Made by a program: the position numbers and the translations under genes | Assembly (NCBI GenBank): GCA_037447605.1 | Contig: CM074808.1 | Location: 2,542,001-2,606,000, forward strand | Reading direction: 5' to 3' | DNA length: 64,000 nucleotides | From: Zygnema circumcarinatum SAG 698-1b | Taxonomy: Eukaryota > Plantae > Zygnematophyceae | The notes under the pieces: model-generated | What the model was told of the DNA's origin: nothing | Databases searched by the model: none | What the model saw: the letters and a program-made list of their open reading frames with translations, nothing else | Part shown: piece by piece, positions 4,667 to 28,822 of the stretch | Numbering within the stretch: position 1 is the first letter of the stretch | How the letters are laid out: every line of letters starts with the position of its first letter

Positions 4667-5044
4667 CAGTAGGGGGTCCTCATATTTTCCACCCTGGTTC
4701 TGGCCAATACGAGGCGAAAATATTGATTTTGCATATATAAGGTTCGTGTTACAAATAGACGGGTGGTATTATGTTAGAGTTCATGTTGGATCGTACGTCT
4801 CGTACCGTATGATATCGTACCGTATCGTACTGTTTCGTTTAGTATCGTATCGTATCGTGCCATATCGTGACGCATAGACGTAGTTTTCCGCTTTTTGTTC
4901 GTCTCAGCTCGTACGGCTCGTACGGACAATACCATATCGGGGCGTTTCGTATCGTATCGTATCGAGCCAGGAAGAAGGGGAGAAGAGCGAGCGCCTCTTA
5001 CGGCGGCACGAGCGGGGAGATTAGGTGAGTTTTGCGTAAGCCCG
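4667..5044 (-). mobile_element. MITE family M, copy M1, left piece (interrupted by gypsy X)
   Basis: TA|CAGTAGGGGGTCCTCATATTTTCCACCC terminus at 4667; reverse-complement similarity to 19660-20129 and 20330-20690; internal CGTAT/GATAC 5-mer repeats. CAGT ends with TA flanks are Tc1/mariner-pogo-like; no ORF. Confidence 0.85.
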
Positions 5045-6050: not shown

Positions 6051-6299
6051 TGCAGCACATGCAGGAGGAAAAACGAAGACACGCCCTGCTTGGTATAATG
6101 AAAAAGAGAAGACAAAGAGGCATGGGGAGCGATGGTAAGCGGGGGCGGGGGCGCGTGAGGCGAAGTCGGCGGTGGAAGCTTCGCGTACGATGGCAATAGG
6201 GGTATTATCGGAGGCCGTGCTCGGAAGAGGCGGCGGTGGCGAAATGTGTTGAAAGGGGAGCCAAAAAGTGGCGGGAGTGCGGAAGTGGCAGCGGGAATT

Positions 6300-9200
6300 A
6301 GAAATGGACCAATGATGCGTCATGGCGAGGGTCACGGAGGCGGCGGCCATTCGCCCGAGCGGTCAGCCGCCAGCGGGGGAGGAACGGCGGCGTGGCGGCG
6401 CGAATGTCGATCGATGGGAACGCCCGGCGCGGAATTTCCCACTAGGAAATCGAGGAGCCCTCGAAATGATGGCCCAACCGGGATCCGGCGGACCCGGCCT
6501 ATGTGAAGGGGCCCAACCGCGGAAGCCCGTGGAGTAAGGTTTGGCAAGATTCTGAGCCAAATGAGGCGGCATTAGCCACGATTGGCGGGAGAAGCGGTAG
6601 CGTCGGCGCCTCCCAAAATCGGTGATTTAGCCAGCATGCTTGCCTTGATGAGTGGTGGGGAGCCTGGAATCTAGGGTTTGAAGCGGAGGCGGGGAGTTGA
6701 AGCTGCAAGCCGAGCCGATCCGAGAGGCGTCGCCGTGGAAAGAGGGAGCTCCAGCGAAGTCGGCGCGCGGGGCTTCACATTATAGAGGCTAAATTAGGCC
6801 GAGGAAGCGGTGGAGGGAGGTGCACCGAGGGTGTTGTAGGTGAAGACCAGGGAGGGATGACCTGCAGCGCCCGATCCGCCCCTCGGCTCAGCGCGGCGCG
6901 GTACCTGCGCATCCTTGGCCGGTCTGAATGAGTACGTTCCGCGAGCCCATTACGCGGGGAAGTAGGGAGCTAGAAGGTGGCGGTAAGGCAATCACGGAAG
7001 TCACCGCATAGGCTTTAGCGATGCCCCTTGTATTGATTGCCATTGTCGGGAAGTGGGCCAGTATTAGGGTAGAAGTGGCGGTGAATGATACCCGTCGAGG
7101 CGAGAGCAGAGTGGATGGAATAATTAGATGCATTTGCATGAACTTCCACCCACTTGATAACCATGTCCGCGGCTAGGAGACCCGAATGTAGCGGGAGGGT
7201 GCCGAGGCGGGGGATAGGTGTCAATGTTCAATCTTGGCGCCTGGTAGGGATCTCACCCATCTCCAGGGTTGGCGGTCGGGGAGCGAGGCGCAGCGTTGGC
7301 AGTGCGAGGGATTTGAATGTAGCGGCTAACGCCATGGAGGCGGGCCAATAATAAGCTCTGCGGCGAGGCGACCATCTTCTTCTTCTGGCGAGGTGGAATC
7401 CGCCCGGTAGAGATAAATTGGCGACATCCGGGGGTATCTCCATCGTTCATTGGGGAGAGCGGGGAAGGCGGAGGGAGTGCGAATTTGTCCTTCATCATCA
7501 GCGAGAGAAATTCAAGGCGGCGGGCGGCCGAGCCCTCTCCGATTATTAAAGTGATAAAGGGGGCAATGTCTTGGTCATGGCGTAGCGGGAAGGGAGGAGT
7601 ACACGGGGCCGTCTCTCATTTGGCCGGGGAAATGGGGAGGAAGTAAAAAGGGCGTAAGCCACGTAAGTCATCCATGAGGGATTTCCACGGATCCGCATGG
7701 GGGGTGGCGTGGGTGAAGTGGGGTCCTCCAATGGAGGTAGTGGCGGTGGCGAATATCACGTCGACCCATCTAGCGAATAGGACATCATCACCGAGGGCTT
7801 GGCGGCAATAAAAATCTCAATGGGAAGATGCTCAGGGTTCAAGAGGGTGGGTGGAGGGATGGGTTCAGGAACGGCCGGATCGTGACAGAGGAGGGGAGCC
7901 GAAGGATTGCGACTGAGGCCGTCAGCATTGCCGTGACTGCGGCCGGGACGGTGAGTGACCTTAAGTACATTATACCACTCCAACTACATCACCCGCTCTA
8001 GGTACAAGCTTGGGAAGCGTGGTAGCCATGATGATGTGCAGCAGTGAGGGCATGTGGTCGATCCGGATGATAATGGGCTGGTAGGCCGTGAAGAGCTTGA
8101 ACTTCTCGAGTGCCCAGAGGATAGCCGCGGCCTCACCCTCAGTAGGGTTGTACTTGGTCTCGGTTTCTGAACAAACCCTGCTAAGCACTGCCAACTGACC
8201 CGTTATTTCCCCCACATCCGAGAATGCTTGAGAAACGGCCACACTGCCCAGAAACTGTCACGACTCCGGTCACATCTCAATAATAATGGTGGGGCGGGGT
8301 AGGGGTCCAATTGATCACAGGAGCCTTGAGGAGCTGAAGGAGGCACTCTTGGCGCTTTGGAAGGCAGAATCTAAAACAAACTCCATTAAGTAGTGAACTC
8401 CGTGCTACTCCAGAGCATACTTAGGGCAGCGCCCGTGAGGCATAACCCTTAATGAACCGGCGATAGAAGGAGGTGAGTCCCAAGAAAGACTTGAGCTGAG
8501 TGAGATTACATTGGAATGGGCATGGAGTCAATTACTTCCAATTTTGTGAGTGATAGTTTGGAGCCATTGGTCACCGATTACTGCTGAGATCAGTGAATCT
8601 CTGGTGGCCCCATTTTGCACTTCTTGGGTGCAATCTTGAGGCCTTGCTTGATGATGAGAGTATTGCCGAGGACTTAGTCCAGTAATGTTGCGAGGTGGGA
8701 GGACCGGTCAACTAGCGTGGATGCAACATCATCCGCGTAGGTTCGCGAAGGCCTGACGGGGGCGAACACACAGATTTGGCCAGCATTTGGTGAGTCTGGC
8801 TGGAGTGAGCCCAAAGGGAGCACAGATCCACTGCCGCGGCTGGCGTGGCTGTCGCGAGCCAGTCTTCGCGGCGATCGGCTGTCGCGGGGATGCGCGGAGG
8901 ATTTACACGCTCAGGGTCACGAGAACCACGGTCATCAGGGAGAGCGCCGTGGAGAATCAGGTCCACATCCGGTAATGTATAGGGATCCCACTTCGTTATG
9001 GCATTCAGTTTCCGATAGTCTCCACAGAAGCGTAGTGTGCCATCCGGCTTTGGGGGCAGAACGGCCGGGCTGGCCCAAGGCCCTTCTCCAGGTTCCATCA
9101 AGCCGGCAGCCACGTTCTCATCGATCTGTCGTTCGACATCGGCCTGCTGAGCGGCGGAAAAGCGGTAGGGAGTCATGGTCATCACGGGAGGTGCATCCCC

Positions 9201-9555
9201 CGTATCGATGTGGTGCTCTATCAGGTGGGTCTTGCCAATGTCGAGTGAATGTCGTGCGAAAACTAGATGATTTCGGCGCAGCACTTGGCGTAATTGTGAA
9301 TGCTTGATCGGGTCTGAGAGGACTGCTGGCCCCAATCGCATCTGACCCTCTATTTCCAGCCACTCCTCATCACCAATGATCTCGTGGGGGGGAAAGCTGG
9401 GTGCAGCTATCACCGGCGGCAAAAGTTCTTCCGTCGGCGCCCAGAGAGCTGGACTCGGAGGAGCAGGAGGGGGAGTCTCGTCATCGGTATCAGAATTGGC
9501 CGATCCATAGGAAGAATGGGGGCTGCCGACCGAATGGTACATGGTGATCTCTGGG
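6300..9555 (-). pseudogene. gypsy X pol remnants (RT, RNase H, integrase)
   Basis: ORF 8712-9542 ...GPWASPAVLPPKPDGTLRFCGDYRKLN; 7970-8242 SRVCSETETKYNPTEGEAAAILWALEKFK; 7756-7983 HRPGRSHGNADGLSR; integrase-like DNGNQYKG near 7020. Many frameshifts. Confidence 0.9.
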
Positions 9556-9565
9556 NNNNNNNNNN
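9556..9565. other. assembly gap (10 N) in gypsy X, between gag-like and RT regions
   Basis: Run of N; true length unknown. Confidence 1.
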
Positions 9566-11310
9566 CCGGACAGGGGTGGCGACCGGTGGAGCCGTGCCAG
9601 AGGAGCTGGCGCCGTTGACGTCGGCAGGGAGGAATGGCAGGGGATGTGAATGAGGATCACTTTGGTTGACAGGGAGCCTGCGCAAGGCATTTGCAATCTC
9701 GGCTATCCGGGCTTGAGCACCCTCTTCAGAAGTGATGGGGGATTCGGACCAAGCCGGTTGCAATGCCGCGGCAATCTGGGCAGTGCGTGAGCGGGCAGCA
9801 GGATCGGGCTCAGCACCCAATGCGTTTGTCAGGGAAGGGGAGTCCATGGGGTGCAGGTGGATGGGCGGACGTTGCAGGATGGTGTAAGCGGGTGAAGGAG
9901 GTGGAGAGGCCCGAGGCGAGAAAGGGGCGAGGTTCTGGGTGGTGTGGGAGTAGCGGGAGCATGTGTCCATGAAGGTGATCTCTGCGGGTGGGCTCCCTGC
10001 CCGGCGCCTCTTTCCTTTTAGGGCCTTCTCGCGAGAGTCTCGCATGCGCTACGGGCATGCGTGTCCCGTGATCTGGCGGAAAGGTGCGGAGTCCATGGTC
10101 GCCATTTGCGGATTATGATTGAGCCCGCGAGGCAAGGCAGGCGCCCTCACGGAACCCCTGCCTCTGTCATCGGCGGCGCCGAGATGGCTGCAGCGGCTCT
10201 CTTGGTGTCTTGTCCCGGAATAAGGAGCCCGATATCTGGGCGAAACATCTGGTATGAGATTCCTGCGGCCAGCTCCAATAAGGATCGCGGATCGCGAAGT
10301 GCAGGGGAAAGGGGAAGAGGGCTTGAGTCGCTGGCTATAGCGAGAGGCACGCACCATAGGGGCTGCACGGGGCGTCACTGGCGGGGATCTCTTGGGAGAA
10401 GGTAACTTGTTCACAGAAGATGCTGGCGGGGTGTTACAACCTCACGATTACGTGTCTTGAGGAGCTGCTGGTAGGAAGTCGATCTTGTATGAGTGGATGC
10501 AATAGCGTTCATGTAATGTGGTGCGTACATGTCGGTTGCCTCTCTCTTGATCACATACAGATCCGCTCTGCCCTTTGGCTCAAGGCACAGGCATGGCTGG
10601 CGGTGAGTTGTCAGCTGGCGGCTCACGATCCAGTGGAGATCGCTTCGGTGATGGCCTTGCGGAACCCGGAAGAGCCGGAAGGGAAAGTGAGCCTTGAGGA
10701 TTCTCGTCGTATTTATGCGCCGCGAAACGCCTTTCGATGGTCGAGCGGCAGCTGCGTCCGCTGTAGCACTACATGTAGCGAAATGCGGTCTATACCGATG
10801 ATTGGATCACAAGAAATCCAGCGTTGTCACGAGAAAACTTGCCCAGATAGCCAATGCTCTTGTCGGGGTTCTTGCGGCGACATCCGCTTTGTGCGGTTCA
10901 GGGCTGACTTCCAGTTGAGCGCCTCTCTTGCGTCTAAGGGCGGCTTGATCGCGGTGCTTCGCCGGGTACGCGCGGCGCAGCTACTCACTCAAAGATAATA
11001 CCGGCCCGAGCTTGCTCTTCACGCTGGCGGTGAAGCCTCTTGTGATGCGTGGTATCCACTGCGCTCGCTCTTTTCGAGGAATCATTCTTTATCAATTTTG
11101 GTCATCATCTCTTCCATCTTCTTTGAGGCTTCGGTCATTTCGTGTCAGCTTACTGCGGGTTGGTGCGAAACTGGAGGTCGCTGCGATGCGTCTGCCCTTG
11201 CCCACTTGAAACGCTTGCTTGGGGCGCGGGGATGGGTAAGTTGTGAGCATGGAGGTGAGGGTGTCTTCGGGAATCCCTTGCTCTGCTGCGGGGTAGCGTC
11301 TGCGGCTGGC

Positions 11311-14300
11311 ATTGAGTGTTAGTGTATGATAGTTAGACATTGTATAGCACGCCTTAACTTGTTGTGGTATGATTTGTAGGAACATGAGATCTGTGGCGTG
11401 AGTACTCTTGGGTTAGGAATATGCGGTGCTACGACTTCCGGGTGAGTACTTGTGCGAAGTCGCCTTGAAATCTGAGCAGCGAAGCGCCGATTAGACCTTG
11501 TGGCAGCAGCATGTCTTGTGAGGAGAGCAGACCTTGTAACTTTGGTGGAATTCAGCCTTGTGTGCGCCAATTCGCAATCTGAACGTAGCGCAACTTTGAT
11601 TAGTCGCCCAGCCTTGAAGCGCGAAAGCAGCGAGAAGCGCAAGATTGCTGGCGGAAAGCGACATAAATATTTGGCGAAGCAGGAATGCGCGCGGCGTGAA
11701 CCCACTTCGCAATGCCAGTCGCGAAGTTCAAGTATACGGCAGTAGCCGTGAGCGAAAAGCTTTGAAGAAGCGTAACAGCCTTTATGCAGACGAGTATGCA
11801 GCAAACAAGAAACTTAAATTACAGCCGTAAATTTCTGGCAACTAGCAGTCAGCCTTCACGAAATCGCCCACCGAACTTCAGTATAAATTTTTGCAATGGC
11901 GGGGCCGAAGCGTGACATGTGTCACGTCACGGACACCGTATTATATAGTCATAGTTTTATTATGGGAAGTAACCGCCCTTTACTTTGTCATAGTCTCGGG
12001 TCTTATTACATTGCACGCTGCGTCTTTAGCTGGCTGCTACACTTGTGTAGGTGAGGTGAGTGAGTGAGAGAGGGACCTTGAAGTAGTGGGAGAACCATTG
12101 TGGGAAGGCAGTTTTATTATAAGAGTTTTAAGTGAGCTTTCTCTAGCTTACTCTCTCATTGTGATTTCATTTGTGCTTGTCTTGTAGCTTCATTACATTT
12201 GTTATAGGCTGATGAGTGAAGTAAGATAGAGCTTTGAGTGTTTGAATGTAACCCGTCAGGTAGAACCAAGTTCCAATAGGCGACACCAGGTGCGCGGTGG
12301 GAGCAAACCCACTGCTTCAACAAGTGGTATCGAGCCCAATTGGCGAGACCGCGTGAAGTTCAACGTCAGTTGATGGATTTAGGACTACAAGGGGAACCAG
12401 GAATGGCGGTTTGGTTCCCTTTGCTCGTGGGGCGGTACGGTAGGAATGCGTTGGCGGCACCATCAAGGCGCAGTGCGGCGGAGGGAACCTGGCGGGCGGT
12501 GGAGATTCGGCGGCGCTGCGAATGAAGACCAGAGACAACAAGGCCTCACCCGAGGTCGTCATGGCGTGAGAAGTCCCTCTTCCATGTTTGTACCGACCTT
12601 GAGCTACACATGCTTGTAGAGATACTTAGAGATGTGATGTAAGGATAGCATGCTAGTCAACCTTTACAGGGCTAAGGAAAATGAAGATGTCACCGGAGTG
12701 GAATATATGGTCGTTTGATACTCTAATGGAGAGAGATTTATAGCCCATTTGCAGCGGGTTAGAGGAGACCATAAAATCAGCCCGATTTCTGAGGACTGCA
12801 GCGATTTGATGTAGCAGTTGCGGCTCTTGAATTTGTTTCTAAGCAGCTACCGTGATGACCTTGAGCAAAGTGGCAGGAGGATCAGGAGGAGAACCTTGTC
12901 CCAAGACGTTGGAGGCACTTAGGAGAAGGTGTTGGCTGCTGCTGGCGACAAAGTTCAAGAGGAGGTCTTGTAGAGGCGGGCCGTGGGAGCGCCTGCTTGA
13001 GGGCGTGTTGTCGCGGCAAGGCGGAGGCACCTGGCCGGCTGACCTGAAGCAAGGAACACCCAAGATGGGGGGGGAGGAGCATGTCGTCATCGCGTCGAAG
13101 GGATTCAAGGGAATGCACTTTTAAATGCAAGCGAGGCGCAGAGCACAGTTGCGAGTGGCGGTGGGGCGAATCTCATGCTGGCTGAGCGTTCTGATTTTTG
13201 TTGGGAAGAAGATCCGGGTTAGCGGTCTGGCGGCCATAGGCGATCGACTACAGCGCTTCCGCGCATGTGGCGTGGCCGGAAATGTTCTCCTGGCTGGACA
13301 CCTTGGGAAGGGATAAGTCCTGTTCACTTTCGGCTGACGAGGAGAGGGTAGCCCGGTTACAAAAGGAGGTGTAGTAAAGATGATCCTCGGAGACGGCTCT
13401 ATCATCTACGAAGAAGAAAGAGAAGAGCGGTTGTGCATCGGTGACGTACTTCATACTCCTGACCTGAAACAGAACTTCATGTCTGTTAGTCAAGTATGTA
13501 AGAGGGGGTACGAAGTCACCTTTAAGGAGAAGTCTTGTGTAGCTACTCACCTAGAGTCGGGGAAGCGGCTGTTTGAGGGGTATGAGAAGGGAGGCCTGTA
13601 TTACCTTCATTATAGGAGAGAAGAAGATGAGGGTGTGATGGCTGTAACTGAGGGTGCAGTAAATCTTTGGCATCGTAGACTTGGTCATCTAAACCATAGG
13701 GGGACTGCAACAGCTTGCTACAAAGGGGCTGGTCCGCGGGTTAGACGTTGACGTAGTTGAGAAGGAGCTAGGCTTTCTTGAGAGTGTGTAGGGGAAGCGC
13801 CTGAGGAGACCTTTCGAGGTGGAGAGAGTCATTTCACAGCGCAAGAGAAGCTAGGGTGGTTCATACCGATTTGTGTGTGGACGTGACACCGACAGCAGCC
13901 CAGGAGGGCTTCGCTACTGTCACCTTCCTGGCGATTTTTCGAGGGAAAATTTGAGTGAAATTAAGTACAAATCGAAGCTTCCCAGGCGTTCCCGAGATTG
14001 GCAGAACTCAGATGGGCGGCGGTCGGCCGAAGGCTGGCAGCTGGGACAGGAGGAATTCAGAGTGAGAAGGAGTTGGCGGGTACTTGAAGGCTCATGAATA
14101 AGGCAGGCTACGCTCCTTACTCCCCTCAAAGTAATGGGCTGTGAGAGGGTAATAGGGTGGCCAGGGGCATAGCACACGGACCATGTTGATAAATTCCCCG
14201 CCAGGCATCCCTTTTGAGAGAAGCATTGATGACATAGCACCTTAGAAATAGATACTTATCTACGTGCCAAGATGAGTTCGAAGAGATTGTGGAGTGGGAG

Positions 14301-17300
14301 AAACCCGGTGTCCCACCCCAGACCTTTGGAAGCCTTGGCGCTGGTGGCAGTGCGAGAAGAAGCGGCGAAGAAAGTTCGACCCCGAGCCGTGGAAGGGTAC
14401 CTTCACCATTTCTGGCATGGGTGATCGCACCTACGGGTGTGGAACCTCAGCGGCGAAACAGTCGCGAGCTGAGAGCGTTACGGTGTAGACGGCGGTGGCT
14501 TCGGCTAGGTGAGACCCGCACCCAAAGCAGGTTTAGAGGTATTATGCGAGGATGTGGGGAACCCGGCGAAGGCATGGGCGCCCGCTCAGTCCCGGCTTTC
14601 CGGAGGAGATCGGCACGCGAGGCGAGGAGGCTGGCCGAGCTTCGCGCCCGGCGATGGAAGCGGCCGTGGGAGGATTGAGCAGAGGCGCATGGCGGAGGCG
14701 CAACCGGCGGAGAGCGGCACCACTACACACTCACTGTCGCGGCGAACTCGGCCGAAGCGTACCTTGCATGAAGATGCGAGGATTTGGAGGCGAGAGAGAG
14801 AGCTATGTGAGCATACTCCGAAGGTTTGTCGAGTTTTCTTCAACGAGCGGGCGCAGGACCTCGGAGCACCCGACAGGCGAGGCCTTGAACTAACTTTGAA
14901 ATACGAGGAAAGAGTGCCTCGGTTCAGCGGACCTGTGCCTTGTTTATGATCACCGAACACTTAAACCTTTGAGGAAGCGCTTACGGCGGGGTCAGTAAAG
15001 TGGCGGCGGCAATGCGGCTTGTGAAGTGGGGCAGTTCTTTGAGAATGGCACATGGCGACGAGGAGGCTGAGAGAGGAAGGAAGGCCATTGGATGCAGTGG
15101 GTGTTGAGTGGCAAGCGAAAGAGGGCCGAAGTCGGCCAGATTCTGGCGGCTGGTGGCGAAGGACTGACGGTGCGGAATCGACTACGAGGAGACCTTCGCC
15201 CGTGGTGGTTCAACTCCCTCCAGTGCCCCTATCGATTGCGGCGGTAGGGGATCTGCGTACGCGCTCGGCTTCGATATCAGGCCCGGCGTTTGCATGCGGA
15301 GATCTTCGAGATCTACATGAGTGCAGCGAGAAGGAGAAGTTGTCGGCGGGAGCATCGTTTGTCGTCTTGTGAAGAGTGCATGCTTATTGAGGCCCAGAAA
15401 GCAGCCCGGGGATTTAATGCGAAGAGAATTGATGACCTCACAGATGCGGATTTCTTGTGATTCGAGGCGGATCATTAAGGTGTGCAGAAGCGAAGAAGAT
15501 CTCATGTGCGTTGGGATCTCATTGGGCGACCTCATAATGGTGAGCCTCTCATTGGAAAGATGATAACGTTGCGGCATTTTGGAAGTAACTAAAATGTCGG
15601 ATCTAGGGGCCTTGATATCTTTCAGAAAGAATGCGGTTGAAGAGAGGCGGGGCGGTAGCTTATTTCTTTGCCTTCGAGAAGAATACGCCTTGAATATACT
15701 TGCGAGTTGAAAATGGAGGAGTGTAGTCTTGTTGGTCAGATGGAAGACAGAATCACGATTGTCGAGATATGATCGCGGCGGCAGTCGCGGAGATACGAAG
15801 GAAATATGCGAGATGCCCGTCACAGTCAGCGTGGGGAAGTTTAATGGCAATATCTAATGATAGGTACTTCGTCGACTTAGCCGTAGGCTTCGGCAAGTCG
15901 GTTCATGGAAAGAATCCGGTCACGAACATTGGGAGAGCGTGAAGCGGATTTTGAATTCGTGAAAAGGACTGCTGGTCGATTCAGTTGAAAGGGGCCAACA
16001 GTGATGGTACACGACTCGGTGGGGAGAGTGATGTGAGCCAGCGTCCACGATCGGCGGTCGGAGATTTGTGTTCACAGCGAGCGGAGGAAGCTGGCGATCT
16101 CATGGGCTTCAGTTACAATTACGATGGCCTTTGTCGGAAAAACGCGAAGGAAATTACATGGGGCGTGCCATGCGCAGCGAGAGGATATTAGTTCCAACAT
16201 TTCTTTTGATGAATGTAGCAACGCGAAACACCATTATTTCTTTTACGGACAACCCGGTCATCATAGCCCTCATGGAGGAGCCACATTGTTTCATAAGAGG
16301 CAAAGAAACACGTTAAGGGTGCGATATCATTGTAAAGTTGAGCGAAAGGAAGGATGATAGTGGTGAAGTTTGTAGGAATAAAAGAAGCATTTTAGCAGAA
16401 CATGTTGACCAAGGGGTAGTGGGGAGACAATACTAGTGAGCGGCAATTGGTGGGCTAGGGCCCATGAGGAGCTGAGTCAGGGGGATTGTTGGTGTTAGTG
16501 TATGATAGTTAGGCATTGTATAGCCTGCTTACTTAACTTGTTGTGGTACTTTTCGGTTGCTTAGGAGCAGCAGAATCTGCTAGAGGCGTGGTCTCTTAGA
16601 TTTAGGAGATAGCCAGTTACTCGGCCTTCAGGTGAGTGCTTGCCCTTGAGAGTGCCTTGGTCTGAGCGGCGGCCAGCAAATTGAACCTTGGCGAAACACA
16701 TGTGTGAGGAGAAGCGAGACAGCATAACTTTATTGGTCAGCGCTGGCCATGATTAGCGAAATGCAGACAGCAGCGCAGCACTGATTAATGCAGCAGCGAA
16801 GCGCGAAACGGGCATAAAGTGCAGCCTTGAAGCGACACCAAATATTTGGCGGCGAGCGAAATGCGCCCACGTGGACCGCTGCAATGTGGAGTCGCGAGTT
16901 TAATCATCTGGCTTGCGAAGTGTCGGCGAGCTGGCCCAGGAAGAGGCTGGCCAGCTTATTGTATGCCGGGCAATTATGCTGGCGGAAACAAGAACAAATT
17001 GGTGAGTAGGTTCTGAGCTGACTAGCCGATTATTGTCTGAAGTGCGCCCTTTCGGACTCGGTGCATGGGTTTCGCGATGGCGGGACGCGGCGTGACATGT
17101 GTGTCGATCACGGACACCATATTATAGTCGTAGTTTTTATTATGGGAGTAACCATACGCTACTTTGTCATGAGTCTCGGGTCTTGGTACCTTTCGTCTTT
17201 GAACACATATATTGGTAGTAGTGAGAGGACGCGAAGTAGTGGGAGAACTTCATTAATGGGAAAACGATTTTATTATAAGGAGTTTTAGAAGCGTGAGCTT

Positions 17301-17491
17301 TTCTCCCCAACACTCTCTCATTATGATTTCATTGTGCTTGTCTTGTAGCTTCATTACATTATTATGGGCGATAGGTAGTAAGATGAAACTTTGAGAATGT
17401 TTAGATGTCTTCATCCGTGGGAACTCAAGTTCCAATGGAGGGCGACACCCGAGGTGGCGCCGGAAGTGGGGAGCAAACCCCTGCTTCAACA
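11311..17491 (+). mobile_element. Ty1/copia LTR retrotransposon nested in gypsy X
   Basis: LTRs ~11311-12322 and 16487-17491 (TGTTG...CAACA in the 3' copy); PBS TGGTATCGAGCC at 12325-12336; purine-rich tract 16468-16486; imperfect 5-bp TSD GCTGGC/GCTGC. The flanks join to match uninterrupted Y at ~22200-22230. Confidence 0.92.
12500..16360 (+). pseudogene. copia gag-pol remnants
   Basis: 13380-13751 VLHTPDLKQNFMSVSQ...NLWHRRLGHLN (pre-integrase motif); RNase H-like IALMEEPH...RVRYH at 16250-16330; copia domain order; many frameshifts. Confidence 0.85.
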
Positions 17492-18017
17492 GCTGCTGTG
17501 CTTGAAGGGACTCCTGGTGCAGTAGTTATCCGACTGAGCTCCCGTGGCATCTGTCTCTGGTGGGCCGCGGAGGGGACCTCAGGTTCGAACGGCACTCCTC
17601 TCCTCCACGGCATGCGGCGTGGCGGCTTGGCTGGCTGCAAGCTTGATAAATCCGGCGTGCATATTGCAGCCCGAAGTTTATAGCCCATCCTTTGCTGGAA
17701 ATGGGTAGCTGCAACTCTTGTCGACTCGATACACTCCAAGGTAAGCGAGGCCCAGGATAAGGGTTCTCTTCGGTGATGCCCATCTTCAGTCTTTCTCTGA
17801 CTGCTTCTTCCTCTGAGTCTGAATCCGTCCTTGGATTTCGGATCGCCTGTTCTTCTTGAGGTCCCAATTCTCCATCTGAAAACTCATGAAGATCTGCCTG
17901 TCCTTCTTGTTGCAGCTCTTCATCCATGGCGGTACGTGACACGAGGTCACGCAAGGATCGGCAACCTCCGCGTATCAAAGATGCGTGGATCACGCCGCAA
18001 AACATACGCTCACGATG

Positions 18018-19015
18018 CAAGATAGGGTAGGGTTGAAGGAAGCTGAGCTAGTTCACCGGTCTTTGTCACGACCCTTTCAGCGGCGTCCAGATGCTGAAAT
18101 TGATGAAGGGTTGGGTTGGTTACGTGGAGTGCACTGCGGCCTTAGAGCCGGGATCCAGGAGGTCCGGAGATGCCTTGTGAAGGCGTAAGGGATCACGAAG
18201 ATGTTCCCCACCGGCGGTGAACCCGATCGCGCCAAGAGCCTTCTTGGGGGCTCTCCTCCTATCCTCTCTTGACTGGTCTCTTAGCTAGGCTTCTAGTTAT
18301 CATTGGTCATTGGGAGGAATGTAAGGCGAGGGATAGAACAAGATGGTAGCTTGGCATAGTGGCTTGACAAGGGGAAAGCGATTACTCAACCTAGATAAGG
18401 TTGTATTTTTGGAAATCACCGGCCAGCGGTTGGCGGGGATTAATCATTACAATGAAAGTATCTTCTCACTGAAAATCTTTATGCGGCTGGGCTGAATGGG
18501 GCCGTCACGAATGCTATAAACCAAGAAGACTCTTTCTCTCTCTCTCTCTCTCTATCTATGGCATGGAACTCTCTCTCTCTCTCACACTTAGCATCTGACT
18601 GGTATTGAAGAGGAAGAAGAAGAACAAGACAACAAACCACCGCGGCAAATACAAATACTAAGCCCGGCACTAAAAGACAAAAAGCATCACCGACATCCCA
18701 TCTACTTAACACGACAATAGATCTTGAGCCTTAGCGGTGGCGGCCTCGATTGTATTTGCTTGAAGGCCTGGCTGACTACGATGGAGCGCCGGGATAGGTC
18801 CAGCGAATGATGTCGGCGGCCTTAGGCGGTGTTCCCGGGGAATGCGCCTTGTGGATGGTGTCTTCAGTGGGCGCCAACACATGAAGCGCCGCCTTTACCG
18901 CATTCTCCGTCGGCTTCTGGATTCGGTACGATCCGTGACCGCGAAGAAGGCATATGTCAGTACAATTGAGCTGGCCTTGGTCAGATGAGAGCGCCCAGCT
19001 CTCGTTCACGCTACA
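18018..19015 (-). repeat. 5' LTR of gypsy X
   Basis: Same repeat as 5045-6050; followed on the minus strand by a degraded PBS-like TGCATCGTGAGC and an ORF starting MDEELQQEGQADLHEFSDG (ATG 17927). Confidence 0.88.
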
Positions 19016-19172
19016 CGTAGCGGCTTCAGATGCCGAATAGTACGAAAAGTACGGATGAAATAGGATAGTGCGGCCCCAACACAAGTTACCATTACCAGGT
19101 GGTTTCAGCAAAATCGGGCGAAATATTGAGGCCTTTTCGAGGAATTGGTAAGTCGAGGATGACCCCCCTTTG
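19016..19172 (-). mobile_element. MITE M1, right piece
   Basis: Noisy match to 28273-28432, including a degraded terminus TGGTAAGTCGAGGATGACCCCC..TG|TA. Confidence 0.65.
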
Positions 19173-19300
19173 TAGACAAAATTGTTTGTACTTATTTGTG
19201 GAACTTTGGATGTACAAAGCGAGAAAATAAACGGGTTTGCAGAAACCGTTTTTTTTTGCGGCGGTCGCCTGGCGTTGACTGTACGAAATTATTGTCCTTT

Positions 19301-19499
19301 CAGTAGGGATGGCCCGCGTTATAAATTCCGAATACATTATTTACTTTTCAACGGGTTTAAAAGTAGTAATATATTATAAAGTAAAAGACTTTATTATATA
19401 TATTATACCCATTCGTTTTGAACAATTAACGACCGTACGACCTAACTCGTACGGTCGTACGGTCGTACCATACCAAAATTAGGTCGTTTTGGCGTTGGC
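19301..19499 (-). mobile_element. MITE copy M0, degraded left piece (host of M2)
   Basis: CAGTAGGG start, CTCGTACGG repeats as at 4910, and ATTAGGTCGTTTTGGCGT resembling 5020-5040. Very noisy. Confidence 0.45.
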
Positions 19500-20129
19500 G
19501 TTGGGGGTCCTCGTATTTACCACCCCTAGGAGTGCGTCCTCAACATTTTCGCTCCGATTTTGCCGAAACCACCTTTTTGTACGGTAACTTGTGTTAGCCG
19601 TACTATTCGTACTGTTCGTACTAGCCGTACTATTCGTACTATCTACCAGCACTAGCGATTCACGAGGCTTCACGCCAAAACTCACCTAATCTCCCGGCTC
19701 GTGAGTGCGTGCGGCCGTAGCGCTTCGCTCTTCTCCCCTTCTTCACGGCTCGTCTGATCACGATCACACAGCCCGATATTATGGTATTGTCGCGTGCGGT
19801 ACATGCGAGCTGGACGAACAACAGCGAGGAAAACTACGTCACATCGTCCGCGATATGGCGATGCGATCACGATACAAAAAGAGGCGATGCGATGCGATGC
19901 GATATCATGCGATGCGATCACGTCTTGTCAACATGAACTCTAACATAATACCGCCCGTCTATTCGTAACACGAACCTTATATATGCAAATTTAATATTTT
20001 CGCCTCATTAGGGGGTGTCAGACTTAACAAAATGTTACGAATATCGAGTTTTTAGTATTACGAGAATTTTTTAAGTCTGACACCCCCTATTGTGCCCGGA
20101 ACCAGGGTGGAAAATATGAGGACCCCCTA
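19500..20129 (+). mobile_element. MITE copy M2 (last 3 nt CTG displaced to 28270-28272 by M3)
   Basis: GGGGGTCCTCGTATTTACCACCC left end; GGGTGGAAAATATGAGGACCCCCTA right end; GTACTA and GATGC repeats. Confidence 0.85.
20010..20088. mobile_element. 79-bp hairpin mini-element with 17-bp TIRs and 3-bp ATT TSD, inserted in M2
   Basis: AGGGGGTGTCAGACTTA...TAAGTCTGACACCCCCT flanked by ATT on both sides; the empty site CGCCTCATTTTGCCCGG is present in M3 at ~20645. Confidence 0.8.
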
Positions 20130-21676
20130 CAGTGGGGGGTCCTCGAATTTACCACCCCAAGGAGTGCGTCCTCAATATTTTCGCCCCAATTTTGCCGAAA
20201 CCACTTTTTTGTACGGTAACTTGTGTTGCCCGTCGCGTTAAATACTGATGCGTCGCGTGCGCCTTGTTAAATGCTTGTCCCGTCTGATTACGTCTTATCT
20301 GTACTAACCCGTTAGAACTACGCCAGCACCTAATCACCCTTCGTGCCGCCCGTAAGGCTAAGCTCTTTTCCCGTCTTCTTGATTTACGTCACGATGCGAT
20401 GCGATGCGATATCATGCGATGCGATCACGATCACGAAACTCCCGATGGTTGGATAGCCTTGTGACGGTATAATACGGCGGTATACGTAAAGTATGATATG
20501 TCATGTCACGATACGATGCAAAATGATACAACACAATACGGTACGATATGGTATGGTACGATACGTACGGTTAAACATAAACTCTAACAGAATACCGCCC
20601 GTCTATTCGTAACACGAACCTTATATATGCAAATTTAATATTTTCGCCTCATTTTGCCCGGAACCAGGGTGGAAAATATGAGGACCCCCTTGTAGCGTAA
20701 CGGAGCTGCGTTCGACAGATCTGCGTCAGTTCAATTGTACTTGACATATGCCTCTTCCGTGTCACGGATCCGGCCGGAATCGAGGGGAATTTTGCCGGCC
20801 GGAGGAATGCGAAGCTGGCCATGTTGGCTGACCCACGGAGCGACACACCATCCAGCAAAGCACTCGGGAACACACGCCTAAAGCCGCCCAGATTATCATT
20901 CGTTGACCTATCCGAAGGCTCCGCACGTAGTCGGTCAGGGCCTCTCGGTGGAGTTGGCCAATCAGTACATCCTTGCTAAGGCTCAAGATCAATGTCGTGT
21001 TAAGAGTAGATGGGATGTCGGTGATGCTTTTTGTCTTTTAGTGCTGGGCTTAGTATTTGTATTTGCTGTGTGGTTTGTTGTCTTGTTCTTCTCTTCTTCC
21101 TCTTCAATACCAGCAACAGATGCTAAGTGTGAGAGAGAGTTCCATGCCATAGATAGAGAGAGAAAAGGAGGAGTCTTCTTCAGCATTAGCATTTAGGCGT
21201 CCCATTACCATTGACTAGACAAAAGATTTCGGTGAGAAGATCCTTTCATTGTATTGTCGGGCCAACGGCTGGCTGGGGTGACTTTCAAAATACAACCTTT
21301 ATCTAGGTTGATCTTGTTTTCCCTTCTTTATCCACTATGCCAAGCTACCATCTTGTCCTATTACGCCTTGCTCATCGATGACCGATGATAACTAGAAGCC
21401 TAGCTAGAGAATAGCCGAGGAAGGGGCCCAGAGGGAAGAAGGCGAGGAAGGGCTCACTTTGCACGCACTCCAGTTAGTAGGTGGGAACATCTTAGGGGAT
21501 ACTAAATCTTCCGTGCTGGCATTTTTACTCACGAATCTCAGGATCCCGGCTCTATCTTTGCCGAGGCGGACCCACGGCCTGACCCAACCCTTCATTGGTT
21601 TGACCCCACTTGGGGCCGCGGCGAGTGGCCCGTCACGGCACATGCTTCGGCAGTCTTCTCTTAACCCCACTTATCT

Positions 21677-21688
21677 TGGTATCAGAGC
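21677..21688 (+). promoter_or_regulatory. primer-binding site complementary to the initiator tRNA-Met 3' end
   Basis: Exact TGGTATCAGAGC, the canonical plant LTR-element iMet PBS. Confidence 0.85.
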
Positions 21689-21758
21689 TGAAGGTTTTGC
21701 AGATCCACGTACCTTGATACGTGAGGCTGCCGATCCTGTGACCCGTGTCACAGCCGCC

Positions 21759-23948
21759 ATGGATGAAGAGCTGCAACAAGAAGGACAGGCAGATCTTCAT
21801 GAGTTTTCAGATGGAGACTTGGGACCTCAAGAAGAGCGAGGCGTCGAAATCCAAGGGCGGATTAGGACTTCGAGGAAAAGCGGTCAGGAGAAAAGGCGAA
21901 GATGGGCATCACGAAGAGAGAACCCCACTTGCTCCCGATGCGGCTTACCTTGAAACAGGTCGAGTGAATTGAAGAGGCTGCCCGGCTGGCGACTTCATCT
22001 AAATACATTGATGGCCATAAACTTCGGCAATATCTTGCGCCCGGATGATCAAGCTTACCTTTGCCAGTCGGCTGTCACGGCCGCGGTCGCAGGTGAAAGG
22101 AGGAGTGCCCGTTGAACACGAGGTCCCCACGCGCGGCCACGAGCCAGATACCGCAGGGCTTCGGTCGGATAACTACGGCACGGGGGAGTCCGCCGAAGCC
22201 ACAGCCAGCTGGCGCGGTCCTCTGGCGAGCAAGGGATTCCCGAAGACACACCCTCACCTCGGCGTTCACAGCACCCATCCGGCAGCCCCAAGCGAGCGGC
22301 TTCAAGGGCAAGGGCAGGACGATCGCAAGGACCCTCCAGCTTTCGCACCAACCTGCAGAGAAGCACACGAGTCAGATCTGAGTTTCCCAGCAAGATGGAA
22401 GAGATGATGACCAAATTGATACTTGATGATTCACGAAAAGAGTGAGGGTGGGGATACGCGGGCATCATCACAGAGGAGGCTTCACCGACAGCGGGGAGAT
22501 CGGGCTTTGGGTACGAGACATCTTGAGGAGAAGGCAAGCGCAAGCGGAACTTGAGAAGGAAGACGGTGGATCAAGAAAAGCTGGCCCAGCAGAGCCGGAA
22601 GGCGGTCAAGCGGGCTGTCCCGGCGGCACAAAGCGGATGTCGTGGAAACGGCGACGAGACGCATTCAAGCAAGCTTTGGACAACTGGATTTGAATCAATC
22701 AGCGTCTTTAGGCAGGCTTACCGCTACATAGAGTGCTACTGATGTGGCGGCTGTTGGCGAATTCGCGGCGTTTCGTCGCGCCCAGCAGCAAAATCACGAT
22801 GAGAACTTGCTGCGACTTTCGAGGATTCTCGGTAGGTTCCGCAAAGACCGCCAGCGAAGGATCTCCACGGATGTCGTGAGGCTGGCGACCTTGCGGCGAA
22901 TGCGGGCCTTGTTAGAAAGGCGAGGCGGATTGAGGATCCAGAGAGAGGCAACCGACATGTGCGACCCGCGTGCGCTGGCGCTTCTGAGATCCACGGCAGA
23001 TGCGACTCTACCAGCGGTTCGAGCCGAGAATGGGTGATTTGCATGCGATCCTACGCTACATCTTAGGAACAAGCCATCTTTCTCCGGCATCCACCTTTCG
23101 GGCGTCGGGCAGCCCATGGTGCAGCCTGCGGCTATAGCCAGCCGACCAAACCCCTTCCCCTTTCCTGTACCCTCATGATCGAGCATCCCCATTGAGCGGC
23201 CGGTGAATCCTCACATACCGGATGTTTCTGCGTCGAGGATGCTCCGGGCTCCTTATTCCCGATCGCACACCCGAAGAGGCGCGAGGAAACCCGATGCGGC
23301 GAAATCCGGATAACGAGCTGAGGGATTCCGAAGGGAGCGTCACGGCCTGCGGCTTTGAATCATAATCCGCCCAGCTGCGTTTGCGGACCATGGTTGCACG
23401 CTACGCGGTCAGGGACATGATGCCACGTGTGTGCATCTTGGGAGACTCTCAAGTAGAAGGCGAAAGGGAAAGAGGCGGTGCGGGGAGCTCACTGCGGGGG
23501 AATCACCTTCATGGACATGCTCCCGGCTACTCCCACACCACCGAGAACTCCGGCTCCCTTTCGCCCGCCTCCACCTCCTTCACCCGCTTACACCATCCTG
23601 CAACGACCGCCTATCCACCTGCACCCCATGGACTCCCCTTCCCTGACAAACGCATTGGGTGTTGAGCCCGATCCTGCTGCCCGCTCACGCACTGCCCAGA
23701 TTGCCGCAGCATTGCAACCGGCTTGGTCCGAATCCCCCATCACTTCTGAAGAGGGTGCTCAAGCCCGGATCGCCGAGATTGCAAATGCCTTGCGCAGGCT
23801 CCCTGTCAACCAAAGTGATCCTCATTCACATCCCCTGCCATTCCTCCCTGCCGATGTCAACGGCGCCAGCTCCTCTGGCACGGCTCCACCGGTCGCCACC
23901 CCTGTCCGGAGAACTTCAGTCCTCCCTCCTTCCACGGGTCATCCATTG
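21759..23948 (+). pseudogene. gypsy Y ORF1/gag-like region (frameshifted)
   Basis: Starts MDEELQQEGQADLHEFSDG, conserved with X; lies between PBS and pol; Pro-rich distal part. Domain identity is inferred from position only. Confidence 0.55.
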
Positions 23949-23958
23949 NNNNNNNNNN
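23949..23958. other. assembly gap (10 N) in gypsy Y, at nearly the same place as the gap in X
   Basis: Run of N. Confidence 1.
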
Positions 23959-26900
23959 CTGGGCGCCGACGGAAGAACTTTTGCCGCCGGTGATAGCTGC
24001 ACCCAGCTTTCCCCCCCATGAGACCATCAATGATGAGGAGTGGCTGGAAATAGAGGGTCAGATGCGATTGGGGCCAGCAGTCCTCTCAGACCCGATCAAG
24101 CATTCACAATTACGCCAAGTGCTGCGCCGAAATCATCTAGTTTTCGCACGACATTCACTCGACATTGGCAAGACCCACCTGATAGAGCACCACATCGATA
24201 CGGGGGATGCACCTCCCGTGATGACCATGACTCCCTACCGCTTTTCCGCCGCTCAGCAGGCCGATGTCGAACGACAGATCGATGAGAACGTGGCTGCCGG
24301 CTTGATGGAACCTGGAGAAGGGCCTTGGGCCAGCCCGGCCGTTCTGCCCCCAAAGCCGGATGGCACACTACGCTTCTGTGGAGACTATCGGAAACTGAAT
24401 GCCATAACGAAGTGGGATCCCTATACATTACCGGATGTGGACCTGATTCTCCACGGCGTCTCCCCTGATGACCGGTGGTTCTCGGCACTTGACATGCAGA
24501 AATCCTTCTGGCAGATCCCCCTGCGACAGGCCGATCGCTGCAAGACAGGGCTTCGCACAGCCACGCGCTTCGTGCAGTGGACGGTGCTTCCCTTTGGGCT
24601 CAAGAATTCCAGCCAGACTCACCAGCGCGCACGGCCAGCCAGGTGTTAGGCCCCGCAATGGGTACCCTTACTGCGAACCTTCGTGGATGATAGCCGATCC
24701 CGCGGCAAGGACTGTGGTCACTCCACGCAGCTTACATTGACCAGAGTCACCTGCTTGGCTCATCGGTCTTGGCGTCACGAGATTGCACACCCAAGAGTGC
24801 AAATGGGGCCACGGGGGAGATCCACTCATCGAGCACCGCCTGCGGCATCAATAGCTGAAACCATCACTCGACAAAATTGAAGCAATTGACCTTATGCCCA
24901 TTCCACAGAATCTCACTCAGCTCAAGTCTTTCTTGGGACTCACCTCCTTCTATCGCCGGTTCATTAAGGGTTATGCCCTCATCGCGCGTCCCCTACATGC
25001 CTTGGAGAAGCACGGAGTCCACTACGAATGGAGCCGAGCGCAGGATCTGGCCTTCCAGGCGCTCAAGAGTGCCCTCCTTCAGGCTCCTTGTCTGCATCAA
25101 TTCGACCCCACCCTGCCCACCATTATTGACGCTGACTGGAGTCAGACAGGCTTTGGGGCAGTGGCCAGTCAAGCATTCTCGGATGGGGAACACCCGGTCA
25201 GTTATGCTAGCAGGGTTTGTTCAGAAACCGAGACCAAGTACAGCCCTGCGAGGGGTGAGGCGCGGCCTACTCACGGGCACTCGAAGTTCAAAAGCTCTTC
25301 CGCGGCCTACCAGCCCCATTATCATCGGTTGACCACATGCCTGCGGCTGCACATCGCTGGCTACCTCGCCCTAAGTTTTGCCGCGATGGGTGATGAAGTT
25401 GGAGGAGTATAATGTACTTAAGGTCCTCACCCGTCCGCGACGCGATCCGCGCGGCATCGCGGCGGTACCGGTCATAATCCTTACGGCTCCCTCCTGCGTC
25501 ACGATCCGGCGTTCACGAACCCATCCCACTCCACCCACCCTCTTGAACCACGAGCATCTTCCCATTGCCAAAGTTTTTATTGCGCTCAAGCCACGCATGA
25601 TGTCCCTATTCGCGAGATGGGCTGTCGATATTCGGCCACCGCCACCACCCTCTCCATCGGTACGGGAGGACCTGAGCTTCACCCGGTACCTCCCCATGCG
25701 GATCAGTAGGGAACTCCTCATGGATGGCGATGGCGGCGGCTCCCTTACTTCCTCCCCATTTCCCCACGAGCGCCAATGGCGTCCATTCGGACTCACTCCA
25801 TACGCGCCTAAAAGTCATGACCGCGTGCCCCTTTTATCCGCGGACACTTAGGGGGCCTGGTACGCTCCATACATCTCGGAGATTTCTACGTTGATGATGA
25901 AGGGCCGGTCGTACCTCCCCTCAGCCTTCACGTTTTCCTTTCCCAATGAGCAGCATAGGAGTTACGGATGTATTACGATTTCCCAGCCAGTAGGATTCCA
26001 CCTGAAGCGAGAGAAAAGAAGATGGTAGCCACTAACTGCGAGGCGCTATTATTGGCCCGGCCTCCACGGCGCGGTGAGCCGCTACATCGAAACTTGCACC
26101 CGTTGCCAACGCGGCAAGCGCTCTGCTCCCTTCGACCGCCAACCCCTAGAGATGGGTGAGATCCCGATACAAGGCGTTGCAGAAGATTGGAACATTGACA
26201 CCTTTTCTATCCCCGGCTTCGGTACCCCTCGCTACATTGGTCTTCCTAGCGGTGGGCGGATACCACGCAGAGTGGGTGGGGATTCATGCAGCGAGAATCT
26301 AAGCTTCCATCCACTCTACTTTCGCCTCAGCGGGCATCATTCACCGCCACTCTCTACCCTACTCTGTCCACTCTGACAATGGCACCGAATACAAGGGGGC
26401 ATTTGCCAAGCTAATGCAGGACTTTCGCATCATCCACCGCACCTCTAGCCCCTACTCCCCCTGGCGGAATGGGCTGGCCCGGAGCGTACCATTGAGGCCG
26501 AGTCAAGGATCTGCGTGTGTTGGCGGTTGCTTGTGAGCTGGAGAAGGCGGGCTGGCCAGTCATCCCACCACGAAGTCTTCACCTACAACACCTGCGGTGC
26601 ACTCCCTCCCACTGGCTTCCACCAAGCCTCGAGGCTCCTCATGGCGTAAGCCCGCATTTCCCACGGACTCCTGGCGAGCCCTCTTCCGCGATGGCCAGCC
26701 TCCCGGATGGTCGCCCGGCCGACTCGGCCTGGCTTCCCAAACCCTAGATTCCATGGCCTCCCCACCACCTGCGACAGCGCCGCGGTGACAACTCACGACT
26801 TTGGGGGCGCCCGGCCGCTGCGCTCACCACGCCCCAGCCAAGGTGGCAGCCCAAACTCTGCATTTCGGCTGGGAACCAGCGCCGAGAGCCCCTTCGCGGG

Positions 26901-27150
26901 GCTTTTACGTGATTGGGCCTGTTTCATGTCGCCCGGATGAGTCGGAGATCGGGTTGGGCCATTTAGGGGCCACGACTCTAAGTGAAAGAGCGCCGGTGGC
27001 GTTCCAGCGGATCGACGATGCGTGCATACGTCCGGTTCTCCCGCGATGGGCCGTTAGGCGGCAGTAGCCTCCTCGTGCCCCCTTGCCATGACGACTCCTC
27101 ATTGGTCAGAACAATTCCAGCGACCCAGTGCACTTCAGCCACTTTTGCCT
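23959..27150 (+). pseudogene. gypsy Y pol: reverse transcriptase, RNase H, DDE integrase
   Basis: RT: LRFCGDYRKLN, FSALDMQKSFWQIPL, VLPFGLKNS. RNase H: LKSFLGLTSFYRRFI, DADWSQTGFGAV, YASRVCSETETKY. Integrase: RYYWPGL..VSRYIETCTRCQ (HHCC) and HSDNGTEYKG...SPYSPWRNGLA. Confidence 0.93.
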
Positions 27151-28272
27151 TAAGCCCACATTTCGCCAGCCCGGCCGTCTCTTCGATCACGGTCCTCCCG
27201 ATACTCCCGTTGCCGAGATATGCGGCGGGCTTCTCAACGAGCATGACTGTCTCCGCAGCGGCCCCGTCCCGTCATCGTGGCTCCGCTTCCGGCGCGCTGC
27301 ATGCTCTCTTCATTTAAGCCCTTGTGATGGCTTATTTTTTTCAAGGCATGTGCTTCACGGTGGCGTAGCGAGACTGCGTTCGACAGATCTCGTCGGTTCA
27401 ATTGTACTTGACATATTACTTTTCTTCGTGTCGCGGATCAGATCGAGGCGCGGCGAGGAAATGCCGAGAAGCGGCCGTAATCAACATAATCAGGTCCAGG
27501 CACTCGGTGGGCAGTTATCCCGAGAGAAACATCACTACTAGGCTCAAGATCTATTGTCGGTGTTAAGTAGATGGGATGTCCAATGATGCTTTTGTCTTTT
27601 AGTGCTGGGCTTAGTATTTGTATTTCTTTACATTGTGGTTTTGTCTTCTTGTTCTTCTCTTCTTCCTCTTCAGTTCCAGCAACAGATGCTAAGTGTGAGA
27701 GAGAGAGAGAGTTCCATGCCATAGATAGAGAGAGAGAGAGAAAGAGTCTTCTTGCTGATAGCATTTAGACGTCCCATTCAGCCCAGCTAGACAAAGATTT
27801 CAGTGAGAAGATCCTTTCATTGTAATGACTATCCCCAGCCAACCGCTGGCTGGGGTGACTTTCCAAAATACAACCTTTATCTAAGTTGAGTACTGTTTTC
27901 CCTTTGCTGTCACTATGCCAAGCTACCATCTTGTCCTATTCTGCCTTACGCTCATCCCAATGACCAATGATAACTAGAAGCCTAGCTAAGAGAATAGCCG
28001 AGGAGAGGACAGGGGAAGAGAGCCCCCAAGGAAGGGCTCTTTGCACATCGAGACCAGCCGCCGGTGGGAACATCTTCGGGATCCCTACGTCTTCCGCTGC
28101 GCGTACCTCTGAATCTCCCGGATCCTGGCTCTATGCTGCAGGCAGACCCACAGCACCAACCCAACCCTTCATTAGTTTCAGCACGGACGCGCGAGTGGCC
28201 GTACAGCACCTGCAACTAGCTCAGCAGTCTTCTCTTAACCCCACTTATCTTGTGCTACACCCTACTGTACTG

Positions 28273-28432
28273 TAACGGCTAGTACAGATAGTACGGCTAG
28301 TACGGTTAGTACGAACAGTACGGACAGTACGGCTAACACAAGGTACCGTACAAAAAGGTGGTTTCGGCAAAATCGGGGCGAAAATATTGAGGACGCACTC
28401 CTTAGGGTGGTAAATACGAGGACCCCCCACTG
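28273..28432 (-). mobile_element. MITE copy M0, right piece
   Basis: TAGTACG repeats, then GGGTGGTAAATACGAGGACCCCCCACTG|TA; reverse complement of the M2/M3 left ends. Confidence 0.85.
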
Positions 28433-28822
28433 TAGTACTACGCAGTCCTTACAATCCGTAAAAATGTACCTGCGTCATATCCACATAATGGAACCGCGTT
28501 CGATAGTACGGATCCCTACACTGCTCTCTTCCAAAAACCAACCTTCACTGGAATGCATAAAACCCTCTTATTGTTAGTCATCAGAGGTGCTCAACATGAA
28601 TAATTTTGCACACGCGTGTGTGGAAAGTTCTCACATTCACGAATCCCGACCCATGCATGCATGCATGTATGGCTCACTTGACCAAACCTTTGCACACTCT
28701 CGCACGCCCACTAGACCCCAGGTGAGGGAGCGTATGAAAACACAACAAAGGCCATGGGTGGACAACAGCTGCAACCAGCCAGCAACAAGTCCACATCCAT
28801 CACGTCGGGGCAAGAAGTCTTT

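Follow-up and report, generated by a model that had tools for sequence, protein, structure and literature searches.

A Ty3/gypsy-type retrotransposon of Zygnema circumcarinatum with a terminal 9-mer that is missing from the 5' long terminal repeat and stands in front of the 3' one

How can a retrotransposon end on the right with a sequence that its 5' long terminal repeat (LTR) lacks? The question is raised by a stretch of 64,000 nucleotides from Zygnema circumcarinatum SAG 698-1b (assembly GCA_037447605.1, contig CM074808.1, positions 2,542,001 to 2,606,000 of the forward strand), hereafter the window, in which positions are counted from the first letter. It contains two copies, X and Y, of one LTR retrotransposon family, and the part of Y under study is the side of a decayed Ty3/gypsy element that comprises the primer binding site (PBS), the leader and gag. 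A preliminary description of this part had claimed that the terminus of the 5' LTR is absent, that a PBS for the initiator methionine tRNA (tRNA-iMet) stands in its place, and that a GT-AG intron would restore the missing letters. The absence was borne out in X and Y by the comparison of the LTR ends and by the PBS match; the intron, in turn, is to be dropped for Y, and the missing end is most simply supplied by a further copy of the terminal sequence lying just before the second repeat.

The two elements, arranged head to head, were retrieved by comparing the whole window with itself by local BLAST, which was used because a gap-free repeat finder gave zero output on these indel-rich copies. 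Self-comparison and boundary analysis delimit them as follows:

20691-28259, plus strand: element Y
5045-19015, minus strand: element X, split by a 6.2-kb block at 11284-17489

Both are old, with every reading frame broken. The LTR identity within each element is 87-88% (the pairs being 12-13% diverged) and exceeds that between X and Y (81-85%), as would be expected of two separate insertions.

In both copies the same layout was found, namely A1-PBS-body-B1-A2-B2, where A is the long repeat (about 990 bp, beginning with TGTAGCG in all four cases) and B is the 9-mer TGTGCTACA, which forms an inverted terminal repeat with the start of A. The parts are:

20691-21676, plus strand: Y long repeat A1, i.e., the 5' LTR without the terminal 9-mer (TGTAGCG...CTTATCT; 87% identical to A2, gaps ignored)
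21677-21688, plus strand: Y PBS, exact 12-mer TGGTATCAGAGC complementary to the 3' end of tRNA-iMet
27349-27357, plus strand: Y B1, TGTGCTtCA, at the expected place of the polypurine tract (PPT)
27358-28250, plus strand: Y long repeat A2, body of the 3' LTR, first letters decayed
28251-28259, plus strand: Y B2, TGTGCTACA, right-hand integrase end and inverted repeat of the start of A, followed by CCCT
18020-19015, minus strand: X long repeat A1, without B before the PBS (LTR comparison)
18008-18019, minus strand: X PBS, decayed, TG-CATCGTGAGC, with 8 of the 12 letters kept
6051-6059, minus strand: X B1, TGTGCTgCA, abutting the A2 start TGTAGCG
5054-6050, minus strand: X long repeat A2, 88% identical to X A1
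5045-5053, minus strand: X B2, TGTGCTACA, up to whose boundary an empty-site paralogue aligns

In both 5' LTRs, ...CTTATCT passes straight into the PBS, with no CA next to it and no B in between; both 3' LTRs finish with ...CTTATCT-TGTGCTACA (Y 28244-28259; X 5045-5060, minus strand), directly beyond which the flanks diverge, and a B1 copy stands directly 5' of each of them. The 9-mer is therefore element sequence that neither 5' LTR carries. The Y 5' LTR had been described as matching up to 21678; such a match is seen, but its last two letters, TG, are the first two of the PBS, and the missing piece is the whole 9-mer. The PBS 12-mer of Y, which we take to be an initiator-tRNA site on the basis of known plant tRNA-iMet and of caulimovirus and LTR-element PBS sequences, is the sole match in the window, even with up to two mismatches allowed.

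According to the textbook scheme, LTR reverse transcription makes both LTRs identical, and integration starts from linear cDNA. In that scheme the cDNA ends on the right at the base with which extension of the tRNA primer begins; therefore, B2 cannot arise from the A1-PBS junction. The preliminary description was right in stating that canonical reverse transcription cannot maintain such a 5'/3' asymmetry, and that the missing attachment (att) end must come from elsewhere in the element.

The position at which B1 lies is the one where a PPT would be expected. No such tract was found in the 120 nt upstream of A2, where purine runs do not exceed 4 nt in either copy and the region is pyrimidine-rich. 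At the junction between B1 and A2 of X, the two element ends build a near-perfect palindrome of 12 nt. As a separate observation, B1 is closely preceded by a T-rich/pyrimidine tract, which measures 8 nt in Y and 13 nt in X (27320-27348; 6060-6090, minus strand); in Y it ends with ...TTTTTTTCAAG|G and is more similar to a 3' splice site than the acceptor that had been proposed, and X is without AG there.

The A1-PBS junction was also found outside the assembly. A query of 2601 letters from the 5' region of Y was compared, at 80% likeness, with contigs from four public sequencing runs of the same organism, one of which is an 'RNA' run by guess only; by the tool's own warning, holes in the coverage prove nothing. 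The family turned out to be very abundant, with high-copy contigs in the three DNA runs, which come from three studies. A contig of 77 nt from an independent run covers positions 21658-21731 with three mismatches and no gap, and spans the junction with 19 letters to its left. Two blocks (21644-21817 and 22253-22426) are covered by extremely deep contigs. On the other hand, a stretch of about 200 nt at the end of the long repeat, bar the final 20 nt (i.e., 21470-21643), was matched by no contigs at this likeness, and the final 20 nt, the PBS and the leader are extremely deep; it seems that the U5-side region (the end of the LTR next to the PBS) evolves fast within the family, with the junction conserved. 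Moreover, in one contig from the supposed RNA run 21772 is followed directly by 22279; the 506 nt left out have GC..AT borders, and this contig is probably a deletion derivative or a subfamily variant rather than a canonical splice.

Pfam matches on reading-frame pieces of Y gave the order reverse transcriptase (RT) - RNase H - integrase:

23981-24649, plus strand: RT fragment (RVT_1, E = 4e-11)
24855-25409, plus strand: RNase H fragment (RT_RNaseH_2 match at 24894-25412, E = 2e-20)
26029-26373, plus strand: integrase zinc-binding domain (Integrase_H2C2, E = 5e-8)
26303-26533, plus strand: integrase DDE core (rve, E = 1e-5, under Pfam's own score cut-off)

The integrase fragments (26029-26533) are interrupted by frameshifts. 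Given this order of matches, Y is an element of the Ty3/gypsy type with a DDE integrase. No tyrosine recombinase was matched among the 19 reading-frame pieces scanned, some pieces lying outside the scan.

We tentatively propose that the layout may well be explained by a joining of the cDNA ends and their re-cutting by the integrase at the palindrome between B and A. The sequence at B1 would take part in the priming of the plus strand; if plus-strand synthesis begins at B1 or ahead of it, the unit repeated in the cDNA would be B+A, or A with a single-stranded, primer-derived tail complementary to B. The cDNA ends would meet, either through ligation into a two-LTR circle or through annealing and fill-in over the 9-nt tail, and the TG common to B and the PBS could give 2 nt of pairing for a joining without ligation. 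The joined ends would read ...CTTATCT-B-TGTAGCG..., and the integrase would cut the palindrome ...GCTACA|TGTAGC..., yielding a linear A-PBS-body-B-A-B molecule with CA-3' ends that would then be integrated. B2 would thus be copied from B1 in each cycle. More doubtful is the wider proposal that this lineage has shifted its right-hand att site out of U5 and into the PPT position, that every integration requires the cDNA ends to be joined (in a circle or through annealing over a 9-nt terminal redundancy) and re-cut at the built-in palindrome, that the same 9-mer is the plus-strand primer site, and that a further copy in the gag region (described below) is a second origin. Whatever probability is not taken up by end-joining and the alternatives discussed below lies with routes that we have not thought of.

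Several points weigh against end-joining. In X and in Y alike, B1 departs from B2 at one and the same letter (G in X and T in Y, where B2 has A); should this mismatch be that of the family consensus, a plain copying of B1 could not give B2. Summed over both elements, the last seven letters of the internal copy in the gag region match B2 at 13 of 14 positions, and those of B1 at 12 of 14. The joined form (end of A, B, start of A) was not seen, the contig comparison having covered the 5' region, with no search for the joined form. Furthermore, X has no recognisable target duplication, only two copies are readable, both old and with LTR pairs 12-13% diverged, and a circle would have two such palindromes, the cutting of only one of which is unexplained.

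As to known systems, the family resembles canonical Ty3/gypsy elements (Metaviridae) in the RT-RNase H-integrase order, in the long terminal repeats starting with TG, in the initiator-tRNA PBS beside the 5' repeat and, in Y, in a 4-bp target duplication. It is unlike them in that the right ...CA end lies outside the 5' LTR, no PPT is present, and the terminus is found again where the PPT would be.

PAT-like, Ngaro and VIPER elements are thought to pass through circular or end-joined DNA. These tyrosine-recombinase retrotransposons carry split direct repeats A1-B1-A2-B2 (PMC4157794), formally the same layout as the A1...B1-A2-B2 repeats of X and Y. Unlike them, the family described here has a DDE integrase, no recombinase in the pieces scanned, a tRNA PBS, a target duplication, and a B of only 9 nt. 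The 4-bp duplication of Y, supported by an empty site, contrasts with the insertion of DIRS, PAT and Ngaro elements, which occurs without target duplication.

The idea of a circular integration precursor was dropped for retroviruses in the 1980s, and what is known of it today is limited to a side activity of the integrases of foamy virus and HIV-1. These enzymes cleave palindromic LTR-LTR junctions (PMC1905944, PMC1180852), and the junction of B and A is likewise a palindrome of both element ends. In those viruses, however, cleavage is a side route starting from normal linear DNA, whereas the layout found here would make it obligatory; moreover, the palindrome described here is already present in the genomic sequence, at 9 nt within the cDNA repeat. 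At its ends, the cDNA of Tf1 retains the PBS and PPT primers as single-stranded copies (PMC11042837), which represents a precedent for 3' tails derived from PPT-position and PBS sequences, such as the proposed joining needs. Unlike in our proposal, the tails of Tf1 are trimmed by the integrase or used for integrase-independent insertion, with no rebuilding of an att end.

This is, in any case, a very abundant integrase-bearing family with an integrated layout that the textbook scheme cannot reproduce, and its boundaries will be misplaced by LTR-finding programs built to expect a PPT and TG...CA termini in both LTRs. If end-joining is true, an end-joined or circular DNA would be the obligatory integration precursor, and DDE-integrase elements would be linked to a split-repeat layout that had been associated with tyrosine-recombinase retrotransposons until now.

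Two of the alternatives make use of a B-like sequence inside the body, which the preliminary description had taken as a splice acceptor:

22722-22740, plus strand: Y internal motif, CGCTACA-TAGAG-TGCTACT, homologous to X 10762-10780 and holding the proposed acceptor AG|TGCTAC
10762-10780, minus strand: X internal motif, CGCTACA-TGTAG-TGCTACA, two B-like 7-mers flanking the first five letters of A

AGTGCTACt (22732-22740 in Y) and the exact AGTGCTACA (10762-10770 in X) are both present at the places claimed. Also correct was the statement that the motif falls within a likely open reading frame: in X the frame is open on both sides of it (A-T-C-S-A-T-A-D...), and is probably that of gag. Chance occurrence was estimated post hoc by a first-order Markov simulation on the body of X, counting X and Y as one event in view of their homology. 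TGCTACA is expected anywhere in the X body with a frequency of 0.19, AGTGCTACA with one of 0.007 (0.002 within the first 1.5 kb), and a 12-mer junction-like palindrome with at most one mismatch with one of 0.005; the internal 9-mer is unlikely to be due to chance (0.002-0.007). We take the motif to be a real feature of the family, a third junction-like copy of the element ends and not a splice acceptor. Central PPTs duplicate the 3' one, and by analogy the motif may be a second plus-strand origin; it may also be what an element sharing these ends left behind, as an in-frame footprint of 12 nt.

According to the first of these alternatives, the internal copy (22722-22740) would template B2 without splicing, through a short primer translocation or a template switch, as in hepadnavirus minus-strand priming. 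Its last seven letters match B2 at 7/7 positions in X and 6/7 in Y, it keeps the A where both B1 copies differ, and the simulation indicates that it is not random. Nonetheless, no complementarity to the 3' end of the initiator tRNA is adjacent to it, its first letter is A instead of T in both copies, and it lies in a region outside the blocks conserved across this abundant family (zero contigs); we consider this route improbable.

Still less likely is the intron itself, that is, splicing from 21679 to 22733 in Y, with U5 and att templated from spliced RNA and the body from unspliced RNA. On paper, joining the two sites does rebuild the 3' LTR end, CTTATCTTG^TGCTACA, and the AG-TGCTAC(A) 9-mer is kept in both X and Y (chance 0.002-0.007). 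Spacing had been adduced as well: the 1055 nt given for Y stand, but in X the distance is about 1041 nt, not about 1063, once the block at 11284-17489 is removed, and the similarity of the two values follows from the homology of X and Y only. The 'GT donor' (21679-21680) corresponds to bases 3-4 of the PBS, and since these positions are found in any initiator-tRNA PBS, it is no independent evidence for a donor; furthermore, GTATCA is a poor donor according to the general splice-donor consensus, and the GT is missing from X, as had already been conceded. The position of the motif within a continuing reading frame also speaks against an acceptor.

A second tRNA primer site, of which the preliminary description had already read no clear trace after the acceptor, was not found there: the 14 nt that follow start with TGA in Y and GCG in X, contain no TGG, and agree between X and Y at only about 8 of the 14 positions. 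Without a tRNA-type primer site there is no start point for U5 synthesis at the acceptor. Moreover, B would come to stand in both LTRs if the template were spliced, which leaves the asymmetry unexplained, and a nearer copy, B1, is available. As to the sequencing runs, no contigs at 80% likeness cover the acceptor region (22688-22774) in any of the four, and their joints listing contains none that links about 21678 with about 22734, the joined exon-exon string itself not having been searched; with the 'RNA' run only guessed, this represents weak negative evidence and no refutation. Spliced LTR-element RNAs do exist, such as the subgenomic RNAs of Drosophila copia and gypsy and those of the plant element Ogre, in which introns serve protein expression; these elements carry real introns, whereas none is evidenced for Y in the four runs, and we know of no LTR-element intron that templates an LTR end.

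We attach equally little probability to the explanation that the asymmetry did not arise by replication, but by assembly noise, independent deletions or the duplication, at the DNA level, of one odd copy. The age and the many indels of the copies would suit it, as would the setting of X and Y, each of which sits in a copy of one flanking repeat. Evidence against it comes from the flanks and from an element nested in X:

20687-20690: left target-site duplication of Y, CCCT, which recurs at 28260-28263
11284-17489, plus strand: insertion block in X, containing a Ty1/copia element that serves as internal control

An uninterrupted paralogue of the Y site (about 28403-28440) matches the joined left and right flanks and supports the boundary; likewise, an uninterrupted paralogue of the X site (about 19600-19720) matches both X flanks. 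The absence of B after A1, the presence of a B1 and that of a B2 are common to two insertions with different immediate flanks, each having its own empty-site paralogue. The LTRs of the nested copia element (about 11890-12322 and 17070-17491, plus strand) both end with ...CTTCAACA, and the 5' one is followed, after 2 nt, by the initiator-tRNA-like PBS TGGTATCGAGCC, which is the canonical arrangement. Since the nested copia element has symmetric ends, and since the contig from an independent run shows the same A1-PBS junction, ungapped and at high depth, the asymmetry of X and Y is not an assembly artefact. About 600 bp (11284-11889) between the sequence of X and the 5' LTR of the copia element are unexplained.

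The least probable explanation of all, a formal possibility only, is that B2 is target DNA, the element ending at CTTATCT and inserting beside a TGTGCTACA site: the uninterrupted paralogous sites are without the 9-mer, the CCCT duplication of Y lies outside B2, and B2 is an inverted repeat of the start of A.

As for the surroundings of the two elements, X and Y are both located inside copies of one GTAC/GATAC-rich repeat with an inverted-repeat structure (4657-5044, 19016-20690 and 28260-28460), and their flanks match one another as well as uninterrupted paralogues lying between the two elements. Possibly the family inserts preferentially into this repeat; alternatively, the region may be no more than a nest of transposons. 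A GCTACG just outside A1 of X was considered as a fourth copy of B and rejected, the empty-site paralogue showing that it is target sequence.

Within the LTR, a (GA)n microsatellite (21130-21165 and 27690-27745) varies in length among the family copies, with contigs carrying GAGAGA insertions and many loose ends. The start of A (GTAGCGT) and the 9-mer (GTGCTAC plus A) could pair like the acceptor stem of a tRNA with its discriminator base (20691-20760 and 28251-28259). No tRNA genes are present in the window; ARAGORN and Rfam gave nothing in the element, and a tRNA-like head of the LTR is thus unconfirmed.

The sampling of the family consists of X, Y and the contig tables from the sequencing runs. 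The search for relatives elsewhere with the RNase H piece gave a best identity of 49% in a profile-free search against 1.84 billion representatives, and of 51% in a word-index search; the contigs behind five RNase H matches come from unrelated genomes or metagenomes. A metagenome scan with the PBS and the leader retrieved five unrelated elements, none of them BLAST-similar to Y, and a scan of viral contigs for the family retrieved nothing. Finally, a metagenome scaffold of 10.2 kb (L002, 1-10218) harbors a distant gypsy-like element, with 49% identity over RNase H; its 55-bp ends are identical, which points to a circular assembly with a single non-coding block of about 1.4 kb, and it could be either a collapsed LTR element or a one-LTR circle.

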